Part shown: positions 21,348-64,000 of the stretch, one piece after another
Numbering within the stretch: the stretch's first letter is position 1
How the letters are laid out: each line of letters starts with the position of its first letter
DNA from: Tetramitus jugosus
Taxonomy: Eukaryota; Protista; Heterolobosea
Direction of reading: 5' to 3'
Length of the DNA stretch: 64,000 nt
Assembly: GCA_937625935.1 (NCBI GenBank)
Contig: OW569355.1
Coordinates: forward strand, 310,001-374,000
Position numbers and translations under genes: made by a program
Notes under the pieces: generated by a model
The model's input: the letters and a program-made list of their open reading frames with translations, nothing else
The model's database searches: none
What the model was told of the DNA's origin: nothing

Positions 21348-21716
21348 ATTGTATAGTGAAACATGCATTTGTCAAAAACAATAATAAAACAAACAATCAA
21401 AGAAGCTTCGGGATTTGTAAAAGTTTCACTCACCAACGGGCAATTTTGTTTTATCGGCGACAAATTTGAGACATCCTTGTCACACGTCAATCACTGTATG
21501 TTCAAGTTTAATCAGAATTGACGAATTATTGATTCGTTGATGACGTAATTGACGTGTGTGATCAACTCAGTTGACTTGCAGTGATCATTTTTCACATTCT
21601 CCACCCAACCACCTATTTAACAGAGCATTTTCATTCGAGCTGTCCTTCTAGACAAACACAAACAAACCCCTGTAAACAAAAACCCTTTGTAATTTAACCC
21701 TCTCTAAATAATAATA

Positions 21717-22844
21717 ATGTGTGACGACGTTCAAGCCCTAGTTGTTGATAACGGATCTGGTATGTGTAAGGCTGGCTTTGCCGGTGATGACGCACCAAGA
21801 GCTGTCTTCCCTTCCATCATTGGTAGACCAAAGCAAAAGTCCATCATGGTCGGTATGGGTAACAAGGATGCCTATGTCGGTGATGAGGCTCAATCCAAGA
21901 GAGGTATCTTGACCTTGAAGTACCCAATTGAACACGGTATTGTGACCAACTGGGACGATATGGAAAAGATCTGGCATCACACCTTCTACAATGAGTTGAG
22001 AGTTGCTCCAGAAGAGCACCCAGTCTTGTTGACTGAAGCTCCTTTGAACCCAAAGGCCAACAGAGAAAAGATGACTCAAATCATGTTTGAGACCTTCTCC
22101 GTCCCTGCAATGTACGTTGCTATCCAAGCTGTCTTGTCCTTGTACGCTTCCGGAAGAACCACTGGTATCGTCTTGGATTCTGGTGATGGTGTTTCCCACA
22201 CTGTCCCTATCTATGAAGGTTATGCTTTGCCTCACGCCATTTTGAGAATTGATTTGGCTGGTCGTGACTTGACTGACTACATGATGAAGATTTTGATGGA
22301 AAGAGGTTACTCATTCGGAACTACTGCCGAAAGAGAAATTGTCAGAGATATCAAGGAAAAGCTTTGCTACATTGCTCTTGACTTTGACGAAGAAATGAAG
22401 AAGGCTGCAGAGTCCTCTGTCGTTGAAAAGTCCTACGAATTGCCTGACGGTAATGTCATCACTGTCGGTAACGAAAGATTCAGATGCCCTGAAGTCTTGT
22501 TCCAACCAAACTTTATCGGTATGGAAGCTGCTGGTGTCCATGAGACCACCTTCAACTCCATTGGTAAGACTGATATTGATATCAGAAAGGACTTGTACGG
22601 AAACGTTGTCTTGTCCGGTGGTACAACCATGTTCGAAGGTATTGCTGAGAGATTGACCAAGGAATTGACCAATATGGCTCCTGCTTCCATGAAGATCAAG
22701 GTTGTTGCTCCACCAGAGAGAAAGTACTCTGTCTGGATTGGTGGCTCCATCTTGGCTTCCTTGTCCACTTTCCAACAAATGTGGATCTCCAAGGAAGAAT
22801 ACGAAGACTCTGGTCCAGGTATTGTCCACAGAAAGTGCTTCTAA
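21717..22844 (+). CDS. ACT: Actin
   Basis: Canonical 375-aa intronless actin; TATA-like TATTTAA upstream near 21614. Confidence 0.99.
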
Positions 22845-23175
22845 ATCTTTTCATAAACAATTTTCTTACATACAACTTCGATCCCTTTTTTATGAGATGC
22901 TCATCTTTGTCAGTTTGGGTTCAAGTACTTCTACTGTCACACCAGAAATCATTTATTGCTATTGTTCTGCAATTCCATCATCCCAAAGCTTATCACTTTT
23001 CAATGATGCGCAAACCTCATCCAAGCTGGAACCAGAGTTTAAACTCTCGACTTCAGCTTGATCACTCAACACAAAGCCCAAGTGGTCAAATTCTTCCAAC
23101 TTTGGGTATTTTCCCTCATATCACTCCCAACTTTGTTCATAACTCCATAGAAGTGCAGAGCAAGGAAGAGAAACA

Positions 23176-24277
23176 GAGGAAGATGAGTTGATTCGGCTCA
23201 TTTGTGAGTTTTGATTTTCTTTTCTTTCCGTAGACAGAGTCCGGCGCCACACCGGAGTAACCAAACACTGTCCAGGTGCAAGCTCTTGTACAGTTCTACC
23301 AAGGTCTCGTACCAGTTATCAATCAATTCAAAGTTTGAAAAACAGAGTAAGAACTATCAGGATGATAATCCGCTCACCAGCGAAAGAGGACAATAAGGAA
23401 GTTTGGAAGCTAACAAAGATTTCCTTCACTGTTGACTCCTATGATTATGAACAATTAAAGGGAATGAAGACAAGAGCCATGCGGGCGGTCGAAGAAAACT
23501 CTATGGACAAAGGGGCCGATATTCTCTTCGGAACAAGAGAGGATCGCAAGGAATACTTTGCCATCATCCAAGGTCAAGATGAAGAACATGATGATAAAAT
23601 AGCTCTCTTTATTGAAAACTTCTTCCTTTTGAATGAAGTCTTCAACAAAACTGTGGTGAGATCAAAGGTCAGTAAGTTCTTGAGAGAAGGGATGAACATT
23701 CAACAGGTCAAGCTGGAATACGAAGATCCTGACAATCAGTACATCTCTGGGGAGGTAGCCTCCCAACCAAAATTTGATGCTGTTGTCTACAAGGAAGCGA
23801 CTAAAAACAGCCTTTTGGCTAAGAAACGAAGGTTGAAAGAGATTTCCGTGAGTGACAGTGCCCCTTCGGAGCAAGAAGCAAATGTGACTCCACCCCAGAA
23901 GAAGCTCAAACCTCAGTTTCCCTTCAACATTGATAGGGGACGTGGGACTAGTTCAATGAGCCATGATAGGCTTGTGGAGAAATATCAAGAAAGGATAGCT
24001 CAGATGACGAGTGAACATCGTGCGGAAGTAGCCCAGTTGAGAAATGAGTACAAGCAGCTTATCAAGGAACACCAAGCGCAGATCTCGGAGTTGACCAATC
24101 AACACCAATTGAAGATTGACGAGATGATCGAGGAACAATACAAGAAGATTGACAAGCTTACCGAGGAACATCGCGAGGAAATGAGAAATATGAAGGAATG
24201 AAGGGTTTAAAAACCGATTCAACCAGATCCAGGAACATTCAATAAATACGTCTTTTATTGAGGCATTCGGTGCTGTG
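23176..24277 (+). repeat. Actin-linked repeated cassette, copy A, containing an ORF (23335-24201) for an unknown protein with NLS-like motifs and a coiled-coil tail
   Basis: Highly similar to the reverse complement of 61586-62508. A polypyrimidine-AG acceptor-like site precedes the ORF. Confidence 0.85.
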
Positions 24278-24372
24278 CCTTGTCCACTTTCCAACAAATG
24301 TGGATCTCCAAGGAAGAATACGAAGACTCTGGTCCAGGTATTGTCCACAGAAAGTGCTTCTAAATCTTTTCA
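24278..24372 (+). repeat. Direct repeat of the actin 3' end (last ~28 codons, stop and start of the 3' UTR)
   Basis: Identical to 22759-22853 (CCTTGTCCACTTTCC...TGCTTCTAAATCTTTTCA). Confidence 0.95.
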
Positions 24373-24403
24373 ACGAATTCAACAAGTGCACAAAACAATC
24401 AAC

Positions 24404-24512
24404 TTAAGGTGGCGGTCTACTGTCCATCAAGCCATAATAAAAACATTATGGTTTCCCGATAAGACACCTTAACGCTCCTACATAATCGGGACTTACATAG
24501 CAGCTTGATGGA
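24404..24512 (-). ncRNA. Putative Fanzor omega-RNA scaffold; the guide would continue into the flank below 24404
   Basis: Complementary pairs: 24423-24432/24503-24512, 24432-24438/24445-24451, 24454-24460/24485-24491, and a pseudoknot 24465-24472/24404-24411. It sits at the element end downstream of, and overlapping, the Fanzor stop. Confidence 0.7.
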
Positions 24513-26960
24513 GTGAGCCTTGGAGGTGTTCCACCATTTTGATTAATTCTTTTGCGACCTTTTTCTTCCTCTTGAAGGCATCGGGACGTGACTGTCCATC
24601 CATTTCTGTTCTCAGTAGATGGAGCATGTTCTTGGCCGCATTGATGTCTCTGTTGTGAGTCACTAAACATTTAGTGGTTGCACACTGTTTAACTCCTCGG
24701 ACGACAGAGACATTCAACGTTCCATTCTTGTCTATTCTCTTATGCTTGACTGGCTTCATGTGAGAATGGCAATGATGACATTTCTGACTTGTCATGAACT
24801 CGTCGATCATTTTCACTTTGAAGTGCTCATTCAACTTTTTCAATAGCTTTCCTTTTGGTGTTGGAGCATGTCCTTTGTAACAATGACCAAAACCAGCATT
24901 GCCCATCCCAATTAACATGGTTCTTCCATTTGTTCTCTTTCGAAAGTCATTCATATCATTGGCAATCGTCTTATCTCTCATTATACAGCTATCCCAATTC
25001 AGTCTCTTCACCTTTGGGGTGCAATAAAAATTCAACAAATCATCCTCGACTTTCAATACAGAATTGATGTGTTCAAGGAACAGACCACTTGTTGGTACAC
25101 CGGCCTGTTTGATTGAGTTATGGAGTTCATCCAAGTTCTTCATTTCGTTCCATTCTGCTTTGTATTTCAACAATCACTTGGAGTTTTTTGAATGGTGGGA
25201 CAGATGTCTATATGTTTTGTTAGAAAACACCCACTTCTTGCCATCTGAATCAGCACAACTCACCAATGTAACAATACCCGGGTCAATCCCAACCAAATAT
25301 TCAGCACCTTCGTTCATACTTGCTTCTTTCTTTCTCTTCTTTGCTTCTTTCTGGCCCTTGGATTCCTTTGCCTTATTGTTCTTGTGATTGCCAACGAGTT
25401 TATGTCTCAAGTGTTTGAATATCGGAACAAAGAAGATTCAAATCGACTCTATCAGAACTGACGGTATTTAGGCCTCTGTTGTATTTCAATTCAATGGTTC
25501 AATAACTTGTACATTACCCTTCTTTTGTCCTCCTGGTTTCTTCTTCTGTTGGAGCATATCTGTCAGTTCCGTTGTACCAATCTCCATGCATCTACATTTG
25601 AAGTGGGACAAGGGCAACAATGCAAATGATTTCGTATCATTGCCAATCAGAAACTGTTGAGCATGCCAGTAAAACTTCAGCATGTTATTGGTGTTGTTGT
25701 TCACAAATGATTCATCAATTACTTCGTCAGTTTTAGCACCACCAAGTGTTCGAACCTCTCGGATCAACCCAGGAACGATCTCAATCAATTTCTTTGGAGG
25801 CAGTTTGACAAAATCATAAACTGGAGTGGCAAATGTCAACTTTCGGATGATGCATTCTATGACTCTTCTGTATTCAGACCTTGGGATTGCTTGGTCATTG
25901 TACAATTGATTCATCCTCACTCAAATACTTTCTCAGTCTTTGTTCCAATGTGAACTTGAGCATGTTAGAAATATTGACATTGAGAGACTTGGCAACGTAA
26001 TTGATGGATTTGGAAAATTTCTCATAAATCTTCCTTAGCTTGATTATTACGTCATCCATGTTGATTGCATGCTCGGCCAGGTGCTTTGCAATCATTCCTG
26101 GATGTTGTTTGGGTAGCCTCTTCTTGATAAATTCACACACTTCTATTCCGTCCAAGCTTTCAAACAGTCCATCACAAGCAACGACAATAAATTGTTCCTC
26201 ATTCGTTTCTGAAGATTTTTCTTGTGATGACACTTTTTCCAACGAAAGAGGTCGTAGATCTGGAGTAACAATCAGAGGTTGTTGTTGAGGTGAAACTCCA
26301 TGCACTTGCTTGTCTTCAAAATCTCCGAATGCTCTACTCATTGCTAAATGACCATCAAGTCTGCTCCGACGAACAAAGCCACCATGAGTCTCTATTCTCT
26401 TCTTTTCCAATGGATCGGTCGGTTTGTGATCCTTTGACAGACCCGTTGATGAGGTTGACATTATCGTCTCTTGTCGGGATAACACAATTGTTCTCCAAGT
26501 GGCTCAAAACGAATATGTTTATAAATCTTGTGAGTCGAAGAGCAATCCTTTTCATCTCCAGAACTTGAGTTTGTATGATTAGTAACAGAGTTGGATGATG
26601 TAACAACAGAGACTTCAGACCGACCTTGACCACGTAATGTGATGAGTGTTTGTCCTTTTCGACAGCTTTTAAACCGAGGTAGATGGCCCTTTCCGTTGTA
26701 AAGACAGTCTCAACGGAAAATTTTACAACTGCACCAATTCCGCAGCTTAGAGGAAACTCACATTTATTGTTGAAGCTACTTGAAGCTTCTACTATCAATG
26801 AAAGTGCTAGCCGCATCAAAACTGGTTTCGTTGAAGTATAATCGTGTTGGAATATTGAACTACATCTTTTGCACTTTAGACAACAGAAAGATGACGTTAC
26901 TCGTTAGGCAAATGCTTTTTTTCTTCTTGGGTGGTGGTTCAATCTCGCGTGGTAGCTCTT
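24493..26960 (-). pseudogene. Fanzor1 (TnpB-like RNA-guided RuvC nuclease), disrupted
   Basis: N-terminal VVKVGLKSLL...MKRIALRLTRFINIFVLSHLE; NISNMLKFTLEQRLRKY; KSFALLPL; RuvC-I LVGIDPG; GHAPTP; RuvC-II IDEFMTSQKCHHC; CATTKC plus RuvC-III HNRDINAAKNM; RPDAFKR. Lesions: PP2C insert, frameshift near 25920, inversion ~25373-25487, in-frame TGA at 25174-25176. The 5' limit is approximate. Confidence 0.88.
26066..26444 (-). pseudogene. Captured fragment of a PP2C (PPM) protein phosphatase inside the Fanzor
   Basis: LSKDHKP...EKKRIETHGG...RLDGHLAMSRAFGD...FIVVACDGLFE. The N-terminal DGHGG and C-terminal GSxDN motifs are absent. Confidence 0.9.
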
Positions 26961-27337
26961 GAAAGAAAACGTGTATTGTTGATATCTAGTCAATGTTTTG
27001 TGTGAGGCTTAAAAATCGGCAATGTTAATCATCGTTATTTCCGTTAGACGTAAAAATGTTTATTGGTGATTGTATGTGGAGTTTTATCATCTATTGTGGA
27101 TGATTAACACTTGTGTATGGATTCTGATGTTTTTTGATCGACCCAATTACGAGGAGTTGGTAGACCGCCACCTTAAAAATCAAAAACTTCTCTTGGTGTT
27201 GTCTCTTTAAAATTGCCCAGATTGCTTGTTCTTGCATTCTTTCAATACAAACAAGATGATCTTCAATACAATGCAATTTAACGGTACTTGCTTATCAAAG
27301 TGTGCTCTGCAATTTGACCATTTATTCTTGTCTTTGA

Positions 27338-61270: not shown

Positions 61271-61477
61271 TTTAAACTATTCATTAAGGTGTTGTATTAG
61301 CTTGTTAAGGAGAAGTATCGAATACAATCAACATTAACTCAGTGAGTTGTTGCAGAAAAAATCCAGCAACATGGTTTAGCACAGAATTCAGCCAGGACAA
61401 TCGGAGCAAATAGATAAGAATTGATTTTCAAGTTGAATGTTGTTATAAAGTTGTTGAATTACGATGATATTTGTGTC

Positions 61478-61585
61478 AGAAAATTGTTTATGAAAAGATT
61501 TAGAAGCACTTTCTGTGGACAATACCTGGACCAGAGTCTTCGTATTCTTCCTTGGAGATCCACATTTGTTGGAAAGTGGACAAGG
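61478..61585 (-). repeat. Second direct repeat of the actin 3' end (108 nt)
   Basis: Matches the actin 3' end and 3' UTR up to ...TAAACAATTTTCT; same 5' breakpoint (GTG|CCTTGTCC) as copy A. Confidence 0.95.
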
Positions 61586-62508
61586 CACAGCACCGAATGC
61601 CTCAATAAAAGACGTATTTATTGAATGTTCCTGGATCTGGTTGAATCGGTTTTTAAACCCTTCATTCCTTCACGATGTTCACTCTTCATCTGAGCTATCT
61701 TTTCTTGATACTTCTCCTCACGTCTATCATGACTCACTGAGCTAGTCCCACGTCCCCTATCAATGTTGAAGGGAGACAGAGGCTTGAGCTTCTTCTGGGG
61801 TGGAGTCACATTTGCTTCTTGCTCCGAAGGGGCACTGTCACTAACGGAAATCTCTTTCAACCTTCGTTTCTTAGCCAAAAGGCTGTTCTTAGTCGCCTCC
61901 TTGTAGACAACAGCATCAAATTTTGGTTGGGAGGCTACCTCCCCAGAGATGTACTGATTGTCAGGATCTTCGTATTCCAGCTTGACCTGTTGAATGCTAA
62001 TCCCTTCACTCAAGATCTTACTGACCTTTGATCTCACCACAGTTTTGTTGAAGACTTCATTCGAAAGGAAGAAGTTTTCAATAAAGAGAGCTATTTTATC
62101 ATCATGTTCTTCATCTTGACCTTGGATGATGGCAAAGTATTCCTTGCGATCCTCTCTTGTTCCGAAGAGAATATCGGCCCCTTTGTCCATAGAGTTTTCT
62201 TCGACCGCCCGCATGGCTCTTGTCTTCATTCCCTTTAATTGTTCATAATCATAGGAGTCAACAGTGAAGGAAATCTTTGTTAGCTTCCTAACTACCTTAT
62301 CGTCCTTTTTAACTGGCGAGCGGATTATCATCTTGATGGTTCTTACTCTGTTTTCCAAACTTTGAATTGATTGGTTACTGGTATGAGACCTTGGTACAAG
62401 AGCTTGCACCTGGACAGTGTTTGGTTACTCCGGTGTGGGCCGGACTCTGTCTACGGAAAGAAAAGAGAATCAAAACTCACAAATCAGCCGAATCAACTCA
62501 TCTTCCTC
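61586..62508 (-). repeat. Actin-linked repeated cassette, copy B (ORF 61618-62409), with an internal deletion of the coiled-coil tail
   Basis: Inverted, near-identical copy of 23176-24277. Confidence 0.85.
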
Positions 62509-62804
62509 GGTTTGTCTCAATAAAATAGAGAACTGTGGTTAGTTCGGTCTCTGTTAAATTGTTTTAAACTTTCTCACTGCCACATCATGGACTCGTTCAT
62601 ACGCCAAGGAATTCGCTGAATCCAATAGCCATAATGACATATTGTGCTGGAACGTCTTGTTCTCCTCTATTTGTTGAATGGGGATGAAATTGAAACCGAG
62701 TAATCATGTTAAGTCAGTCTGATCTCAAACAGAAACTGACAAACATGAGCATCTCATAAGAAAGGGATCGACGTTGTATGTAAGAAAAATGTTTATGAAA
62801 AGAT

Positions 62805-63932
62805 TTAGAAGCACTTTCTGTGGACAATACCTGGACCAGAGTCTTCGTATTCTTCCTTGGAGATCCACATTTGTTGGAAAGTGGACAAGGAAGCCAAGAT
62901 GGAGCCACCAATCCAGACAGAGTACTTTCTCTCTGGTGGAGCAACAACCTTGATCTTCATGGAAGCAGGAGCCATATTGGTCAATTCCTTGGTCAATCTC
63001 TCAGCAATACCCTCGAACATGGTTGTACCACCGGACAAGACAACGTTTCCGTACAAGTCCTTTCTGATATCAATATCAGTCTTACCAATGGAGTTGAAGG
63101 TGGTTTCATGGACACCAGCAGCTTCCATACCAATAAAGTTTGGTTGGAACAAAACTTCAGGGCATCTGAATCTTTCGTTACCGACAGTGATGACATTACC
63201 GTCAGGCAATTCATAGGACTTTTCAACGACAGAGGACTCTGCAGCCTTCTTCATTTCTTCGTCAAAGTCAAGAGCAATGTAGCAAAGCTTTTCCTTGATA
63301 TCTCTGACAATTTCTCTTTCGGCAGTAGTTCCGAATGAGTAACCTCTTTCCATCAAAATCTTCATCATGTAGTCAGTCAAGTCACGACCAGCCAAATCAA
63401 TTCTCAAAATGGCATGAGGCAAAGCATAACCTTCATAGATAGGGACAGTGTGGGAAACACCATCACCAGAATCCAAGACGATACCAGTGGTTCTTCCGGA
63501 AGCATACAAGGACAAGACAGCTTGGATAGCAACGTACATTGCAGGGACGGAGAAGGTCTCAAACATGATTTGAGTCATCTTTTCTCTGTTGGCCTTTGGG
63601 TTCAAAGGAGCTTCAGTCAACAAGACAGGGTGCTCTTCTGGAGCAACTCTCAACTCATTGTAGAAGGTGTGATGCCAGATCTTTTCCATATCGTCCCAGT
63701 TGGTCACAATACCGTGTTCAATTGGGTACTTCAAGGTCAAGATACCTCTCTTGGATTGAGCCTCATCACCGACATAGGCATCCTTGTTACCCATACCGAC
63801 CATGATGGACTTTTGCTTTGGTCTACCAATGATGGAAGGGAAGACAGCTCTTGGTGCGTCATCACCGGCAAAGCCAGCCTTACACATACCAGATCCGTTA
63901 TCAACAACTAGGGCTTGAACGTCGTCACACAT
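62805..63932 (-). CDS. ACT: Actin (protein identical to the 21717-22844 copy)
   Basis: Same 375-aa protein with only a handful of synonymous differences. Confidence 0.99.
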
Positions 63933-64000
63933 GTTTTATATTTAAGAGTTTTGGAGAGAGGTTAAATTACAAGTTTTTGTTTTGTTTTGTTTTTGGAGAG

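Follow-up and report, generated by a model that had tools for sequence, protein, structure and literature searches.

What a Fanzor nuclease does in its own genome is the question raised by a transposon copy at positions 24404-27176 of the window, the 64,000-nucleotide stretch of Tetramitus jugosus DNA that was analysed. The preliminary description, made from sequence alone, had read this copy as a dead Fanzor1 gene in a TIR/TTAA transposon of a heterolobosean. That reading would have been refuted if the protein failed to align with Fanzor/TnpB RuvC profiles, or if the TIR pair never recurred around related sequences elsewhere in the genome. Neither was the case. A search of the assembly (26,350,207 bases in 56 contigs) located about 40 related loci with the same ends, and the RuvC/zinc finger profile, the SpuFz1 match and the fold of an intact sister are described below. 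The window copy is thus a dead member of a Fanzor1 family.

The copy is bounded by arms at 24404-24420 and 27160-27176, each 17 nt long including TTAA and 100% complementary to each other. The left end consists of a TTAA target-site duplication (27173-27176), which is the core of the predicted TAM and is preceded by T,T at 27177-27178 on the minus strand, and a 13 bp TIR starting with GG (27160-27172, minus). The right end consists of a 13 bp TIR (24408-24420, plus) and a second TTAA (24404-24407), which is also part of the predicted omega-RNA scaffold. Each 13-mer occurs only once within the 64-kb window. Between the ends lie the surviving pieces of the gene: an N-terminal (WED-I/REC) piece containing VVKVGLKSLL (26476-26670, minus), with the start codon deleted just upstream and 60 nt deleted just downstream; a REC/WED piece containing KSFALLP (25486-26060, minus), with frameshifts near 25920 and 25495; an internal inversion containing SIRTDG (25407-25482, plus); a RuvC-I piece (25177-25406, minus) with GIDPG at 25276-25290; a premature TGA (25174-25176, minus); and a RuvC-II/III and zinc finger (TNB) piece (24493-25173, minus; PF07282, E 1.7e-10) with IDEFMTS at 24787-24807 and NRDINAA at 24634-24654, closed by the native stop (24493-24495, minus). 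CxxC..Cx4C, GHAPTP and RPDAFKR are also present on the minus strand. As the preliminary description had claimed, the 13-bp TIRs are perfect, with TTAA on both sides at the exact positions given, the three RuvC motifs, the zinc finger and the Fanzor1 blocks are on the minus strand, and there is a TGA at 25174; the one exception is TDG, which is on the plus strand within the inversion.

Alignment to intact sisters showed how the copy was damaged. A deletion of 118-134 nt at 26667/26670 removed the start codon and the first codons. Further deletions are of 60 nt (26475/26476), 2 nt (near 25920), 1 nt (near 25495) and 6 nt (near 25138-25142); 78 nt at ~25407-25482 are inverted, and 112 nt at 26767-26878 are missing from intact copies. 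A further change is a captured fragment of a host PP2C phosphatase gene (26061-26440, minus; PF00481, E 4.6e-28; net insert 373 nt), which is 99.7% identical to the host gene on contig 4 (G000:C4:144002-144381) and has microhomologies of 4 and 7 nt at its joints. With the start lost and a stop, frameshifts, the inversion and the insert in the way, no uninterrupted ORF remains. The last 738 nt, in comparison with intact copies, retain 99% identity. The inversion and the insert had been noticed before, at ~25373-25487 and 26060-26444; both held, with the bounds corrected and the insert now identified. The loss of the start codon, the 60-, 1- and 6-nt deletions and the 112-nt insert had been missed, and the claim that the protein could be predicted from one window was not supported, the start and ~35 codons being deleted. 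As intact sister copies exist, repair of the ORF was unneeded; all searches and the fold rest on one of them, L005 (G000:C16).

A stretch coding for PPPKKKK exists at 26917-26937 (minus), as described earlier; its reading as an SV40-like NLS remnant of the Fanzor was rejected. It lies in the upstream non-coding or cargo part, behind an in-frame stop and separated from the downstream ATG of intact copies by ~200 nt or more, and is therefore no part of the Fanzor protein. Intact proteins begin MPRGVPKDGKRKRKR, with their own basic patch. The surrounding segment, 26758-26958, resembles G000:C6:576495-576700 at 84%. The element sits 31 nt past a unit (21674-24372) in which an actin gene is followed by an ORF of 288 aa and by a duplicated 95 nt from the actin 3' end; this unit occurs twice in the window, inverted (second copy 61474-63982; 95-100% identity), and the 288-aa ORF beside actin has many variants in strain contigs. 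The Fanzor family and the left junction of the window locus are both present in contigs of a groundwater strain, which show presence only.

The intact protein is a Fanzor1 rather than a Fanzor2 or TnpB, with extended REC/WED; this is shown by sequence match and fold, without a tree including reference Fanzors. Among PDB sequences, L005 best matched SpuFz1 (phmmer E 2e-15), and no Fanzor2 or TnpB there matched it. Its AlphaFold2 model (pLDDT 90.7) superimposed on SpuFz with a TM of 0.71 (E 1e-24), on PpFz with 0.64 and on GtFz with 0.60, versus 0.22-0.26 for Fanzor2 and TnpB structures (mimivirus Fanzor2 9B0L 0.22, TnpB 0.23). The comparison with SpuFz1 and GtFz1 proposed earlier was thus made with an intact sister. 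D378, G507, E541, the C4 finger and R591-D592 are invariant in intact copies. The residue constellation that defines Fanzor1 (PMC3627910), D-X(125-275)-[TS][TS]-XX-C4-X(5-50)-RD, is met in intact copies and window pieces by D378, TS, C548/C551/C580/C585 and R591-D592. The rearranged RuvC-II is also present: G507 occupies the canonical site and the catalytic E541 lies seven residues before C548. The features of IS607EU/Fanzor2, IS607-type TnpB similarity, a serine recombinase and absence of TIR and TSD, are not met. That the family performs RNA-guided, TAM-dependent DNA cleavage is inferred; support is indirect (dN/dS, flank bias, junction duplications) and there are no cleavage data.

Nineteen copies retain an uninterrupted full-length ORF of 628-649 aa, 65-98% identical to L005. 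Their dN/dS values are 0.11-0.33, very young pairs included, which shows purifying selection on the intact sisters. One cassette is carried by three TIR sets, A1 (the window type), A2 and an unrelated B type, all of the form TTAA|GG..CC|TTAA with a left subterminal motif in common. The TTAA is a target-site duplication, because removing the element to a single TTAA rejoins long split host reading frames at two copies, C19 and C22 (169+106 and 97+173 codons). Longer copies contain host cargo, such as a Vps35 fragment, and family copies are mosaics. One 320-bp ghost copy (L039, G000:C8:461447-461765) has both ends and the full predicted scaffold without a gene. Two metagenomic homologues (76% and 60% identity) have the same TIR and TTAA ends, and two others (62-64%) end differently. 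Outside a set of six close relatives, identity drops below ~40%; this is a divergent Fanzor1 clade, the nearest outside relatives of which are <30-40% identical.

What kind of element carries the gene? TTAA duplications at all intact ends and 5'-RR..YY-3' termini (GG..CC) with TIRs, seen in all three TIR types and in the two metagenomic homologues, fit the published signature of Kolobok, a superfamily known from Naegleria (PMC9587614). We lean toward a non-autonomous Kolobok as the carrier. Since no matching transposase was found, membership is unproven. Kolobok is not listed among Fanzor carriers in the 2026 review (PMC13565253) or in the surveys searched (Repbase not covered), and the superfamily is likely to be new for Fanzors. 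None of the family copies examined contains a transposase gene, nor do the contexts of eight homologues. A PF20700 profile search of the genome, run without a control, gave no match. PF13843 gave 12 matches, and the two two-copy elements and one single element examined all have other ends. Co-location of PF00929 and PF02037 yielded only the PAN2 host gene and a P-like transposase, without TTAA-GG ends. A TIR scan of metagenome contigs returned 120 matches, none related, and viral contigs contained no matching transposase element.

It remains possible that the carrier belongs to another TTAA-using superfamily (piggyBac-like, Sola2-like or unclassified) and that GG..CC is kept for the omega-RNA stem. 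In favor of this, no Kolobok transposase was found, the genome has piggyBac-type transposases, unclassified Fanzor1 elements with TTAN and 13-bp TIRs are known from insect viruses (PMC3627910), and CCUUAA belongs to the predicted RNA stem. Against it, TTAA with RR..YY is the stated Kolobok signature, Kolobok is present in Naegleria, and piggyBac itself does not fit, the family ends being GG..CC and the examined piggyBac-type elements ending differently. Two of the latter are young two-copy elements, 99.6-99.9% identical (L193/L194 at C18:38.3-40.3 kb and C39:393-395 kb; L195/L196 at C18:148.3-152 kb and C30:265.6-269.2 kb), flanked by AATT/ATTT-like and ATAT sites, not TTAA. The P-element-like transposase (L220, G000:C11:177900-182000, minus) is a frame of >1100 aa fused to a DEDDh exonuclease and a PHD-like finger; the part examined has no TTAA-GG ends.

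The right end of the element is predicted to encode the omega-RNA. The region between gene and element end is conserved and foldable (z -1.6 to -3.4). In the window copy the predicted scaffold occupies 24404-24506 on the minus strand (5' limit approximate) and is 99% identical to intact copies; its predicted fold consists of a small hairpin over the stop codon and a long stem closed by GUUAAGG (24467-24473) and the terminal CCUUAA. GUUAAGG recurs 70-83 nt before the element end in eight lineages, and in seven of these its predicted pairing probability with CCUUAA is 0.7-1.0. This predicted pairing places the duplicated TTAA inside the scaffold and the start of the guide directly past it, where the 2026 review describes the Fanzor1 guide to start (PMC13565253). 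The closing stem is invariant, so the evidence is conservation and not covariation. The consensus that RNAalifold drew from a plain alignment was weak and lacked the long stem, because this alignment misplaces the C32 lineage; Rfam had no match for the scaffold. The predicted guide, ~15 nt long by analogy (PMC13565253), is the host flank at 24389-24403 (minus), and TTAA followed by this sequence is found in the assembly only at the copy's own right end. Among RNA-like contigs there are transcripts over this region and over the 3' half of the Fanzor gene; contigs show presence only and give no small-RNA ends. A functional, expressed guide is therefore an inference, without guide-expression data. 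The window copy cannot make protein, yet with its scaffold and ends undamaged it may remain a source of guide RNA and a substrate for transposition in trans. A scaffold piece of 104 nt followed by TTAA and 15 nt lies on C10 (L040, G000:C10:247190-247310), bracketed by a 9-nt direct repeat, and has the size of a whole omega-RNA; its interpretation as an omega-RNA retrocopy was set aside, no donor site or second guide site having been found.

The left flank suggests what the nuclease would recognise. The base before the left TTAA is A or T at 22 of 23 left TIR ends, and at 28 of 29 when the junction sites discussed below are added (background 0.61, p 1e-5); position -2 is never A. The mirror positions past the right TTAA lack this bias: C precedes the left TTAA in 1/29 sites versus G following the right TTAA in 16/38 (p 2e-4), and A at -2 occurs in 0/29 versus T at +2 in 10/38 (p 0.004). 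A symmetric target preference therefore does not explain the pattern. An oriented preference of the transposase is not excluded and is a possible source of the bias. The filled right end reads CC-TTAA, the CC coming from the element's own end, and with bare TTAA as TAM every filled right end would be a target. From the flank bias, and without cleavage data, we infer a TAM near (Y)W-TTAA that avoids self-cutting at CC-TTAA. A bare TTAA as TAM is unsupported; the family data suggest extra upstream bases. SpuFz1 follows the same logic, its TAM, CA+TA, being the target duplication with additional upstream bases (PMC10432273). The only copy with C before the left TTAA (L019/L216, G000:C24:244738-248274) has a damaged right end, 2 nt short.

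Truncated copies provided a second line of evidence. Right-end-only loci number 18 and left-end-only loci 2 (p 4e-4; variant left ends may have been missed). At five of the 18, the left junction consists of TTAA plus the first nucleotides of the copy's own right flank, that is, of its predicted guide: +9 nt on C48, +11 nt on C52, +12 nt on C3, +9 exact or +16 with one mismatch on C24, and +8, then to +22 with a 1-nt gap, on C25. By chance, a 13-nt match would fall within 25 nt of a junction with a probability of ~4e-7. No such duplication occurs in copies with both TIRs or in the two left-only copies. Twelve of the 18 right-only copies also lack it, and one (C2) is ambiguous and was set aside as a scar because a similar site sits in cargo common to the C22 copy. 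Published Fanzor1 cuts fall 14-21 nt after the TAM (PMC10432273); most of the duplications (9-12 nt) are shorter, and end trimming must therefore be assumed. A similar picture was described by Bao and Jurka (2013) for Fanzor1-Helitrons, which are 3'-biased and 5'-truncated with 7-19-bp duplications that are rare in Fanzor-free Helitrons, and was ascribed to rolling-circle copying (PMC3627910); Craig (2023) speculated on a role of Fanzor in it (PMC10288648). With the same pattern seen in a TIR element, rolling-circle copying no longer explains it, and Fanzor1 is what the two kinds of element have in common. On balance, we regard the junctions as probable in vivo footprints of Fanzor-initiated homing, the cleavage and homing themselves being inferred.

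The homing model, which we favor by a modest margin, describes a young non-autonomous cut-and-paste family whose sole own gene is Fanzor1 and whose element is restored by cutting the empty site. A DDE transposase acting in trans (Kolobok type by the ends, not found) would excise the element, leaving one TTAA. The omega-RNA read from the right end (scaffold, UUAA and ~15 nt of flank) would guide Fanzor1 to the empty site, recognised through a TAM of approximately 5'-(Y)W-TTAA, with the filled right end CC-TTAA spared. A cut 14-21 nt into the flank, repaired from the filled sister or homologous allele, would restore the element. If repair aborted, copying inward from the right flank of the filled allele would stop with the right part only, and this partial copy would be joined to the trimmed broken left end, which still has TTAA and the first guide-matching bases, producing the scars. 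Template switching during such repair may account for the captured host fragments (PP2C, Vps35) and the mosaic copies. The ends, the TTAA duplication, the Fanzor1 fold, selection, flank statistics and junction duplications are shown; Kolobok-type excision, guide expression, cleavage and homing are inferred. Against the model, no transposase with matching ends was found, and no empty allele of the window locus was seen in four contig sets (four runs).

A referee may object that Fanzor1 is merely a passenger: the transposase makes the break, one-sided gap repair with microhomology-primed templated filler from the right flank makes the scars, and the upstream base bias is an oriented target preference of the transposase. 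DDE excision does leave a double-strand break, to which a Fanzor may add little (PMC13565253), the family has many microhomology joints and templated inserts, and short direct or inverted flank pieces occur at two other junctions (C10, C19). However, a transposase break is symmetric, and the family shows an 18:2 excess of right ends with duplications on the guide side only; the Fanzor is under purifying selection; and the same one-sided pattern is seen in Fanzor1-Helitrons and hardly in Fanzor-free ones (PMC3627910). We consider the passenger view unlikely.

Less likely still is that the 5'-truncated copies are retrocopies, formed when the Fanzor transcript or the omega-RNA was reverse-transcribed in a LINE-type or guide-primed manner. 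Truncation at the 5' end with a 13-26-nt duplication is the classic mark of retrotransposition, which the copies resemble, and three short pieces are of omega-RNA size (104 nt on C10, 114 nt on C24, 42 nt on C25). Against this view, there is no poly(A), all pieces end exactly at the TIR, all duplications start with TTAA, and the C10 guide has no second site. In addition, two of the copies, C48 (2.6 kb) and C3 (4.0 kb), extend well upstream of the Fanzor gene, the former stopping only ~40 nt short of the left end. For the short pieces, an RNA template with priming at a Fanzor cut remains possible.

Homing thus remains the preferred reading, and it may be compared with known systems. So far, only TnpB and IscB of bacteria have been shown to carry out restorative homing, and its benefit for DDE transposons is doubted (PMC13565253). 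IS605/IS607 TnpB is alike by inference, in the right-flank guide, left-flank TAM and empty-site cut; the Tetramitus carrier differs in being a TSD-making TIR element, so that TTAA is duplicated at both ends and absorbed into the RNA scaffold. A close known system is Spu-1 of Spizellomyces punctatus, with its SpuFz1 (PDB 8GKH, 9CEU-9CEZ): fold, length (~640 aa) and rearranged RuvC are alike, and Spu-1 is also a single-ORF element between inverted repeats without a transposase, with a right-end omega-RNA and many intact and short ghost copies. The Tetramitus family differs in its 18% identity, TTAA duplication, 13-bp GG..CC TIRs, three interchangeable TIR sets, captured host cargo and heterolobosean host, and guide-matching junction duplications are unreported in the literature sections bearing on Spu-1. 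GtFz1 of Guillardia theta has a measured TTAA TAM, where a TTAA core is predicted in Tetramitus; its loci lack inverted repeats (PMC10432273) and its third catalytic residue is N, whereas the Tetramitus family keeps D and TIRs. The Fanzor1-Helitrons CRe-1, -2 and -3 of Chlamydomonas reinhardtii share the 3' excess, 5'-truncated copies and duplications, tied there to a fixed tetranucleotide, on a Helitron rather than a TIR/TTAA chassis, and are read as rolling-circle one-ended transposition. Non-autonomous Koloboks share the TTAA duplication, RR..YY ends, short TIRs and presence in Heterolobosea; no transposase or KolX was found in the Tetramitus family, and Fanzor is not among the listed Kolobok accessory proteins. 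NlovFz2 of Naegleria lovaniensis, a Fanzor2, shares the host lineage and RuvC/TNB core, whereas the Tetramitus protein reaches a TM of only 0.22 with Fanzor2 structure 9B0L and has no PDB sequence match in that group.

In a bolder reading, which could as easily prove wrong as right, a Kolobok-type family has co-adapted with Fanzor1, with the TSD taken into the RNA scaffold and the TAM extended against the element's own end, and the genome keeps several direct footprints of homing. If true, these footprints would give the first evidence from genome sequence for in vivo cutting of vacated donor sites by eukaryotic Fanzors, evidence that does not depend on Helitron biology, and the "one-ended transposition" duplications of Chlamydomonas would also be re-explained. 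The family bears on the role of Fanzors in their own genomes: it offers 19 intact enzymes, readable guides, a TAM whose self/non-self rule can be tested, and junctions at which the predicted cut sites are marked. The host is a free-living amoeba that can be cultured, and its assembly is chromosome-level and has a second haplotype (PMC11106597).

Some related lineages add observations of their own. The two 62-64% homologues (L067:2437-4560 and L068:1631-3900, JGI 3300042923) share a different right end that lacks CC-TTAA and have small intronless genes as neighbours; the same Fanzor1 clade may ride another element type or a viral region. A Fanzor1 lineage of 40% identity has B-type TIRs (L065, G000:C32:2808-4989), and its insertion and flank recur (L221) in an unrelated sequencing run, SRR7962542. 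The L026, L027 and L028 proteins are 65% identical to the main family overall and identical to it over the last 70 residues and the RNA region, a pattern of 3' ends homogenised across lineages.
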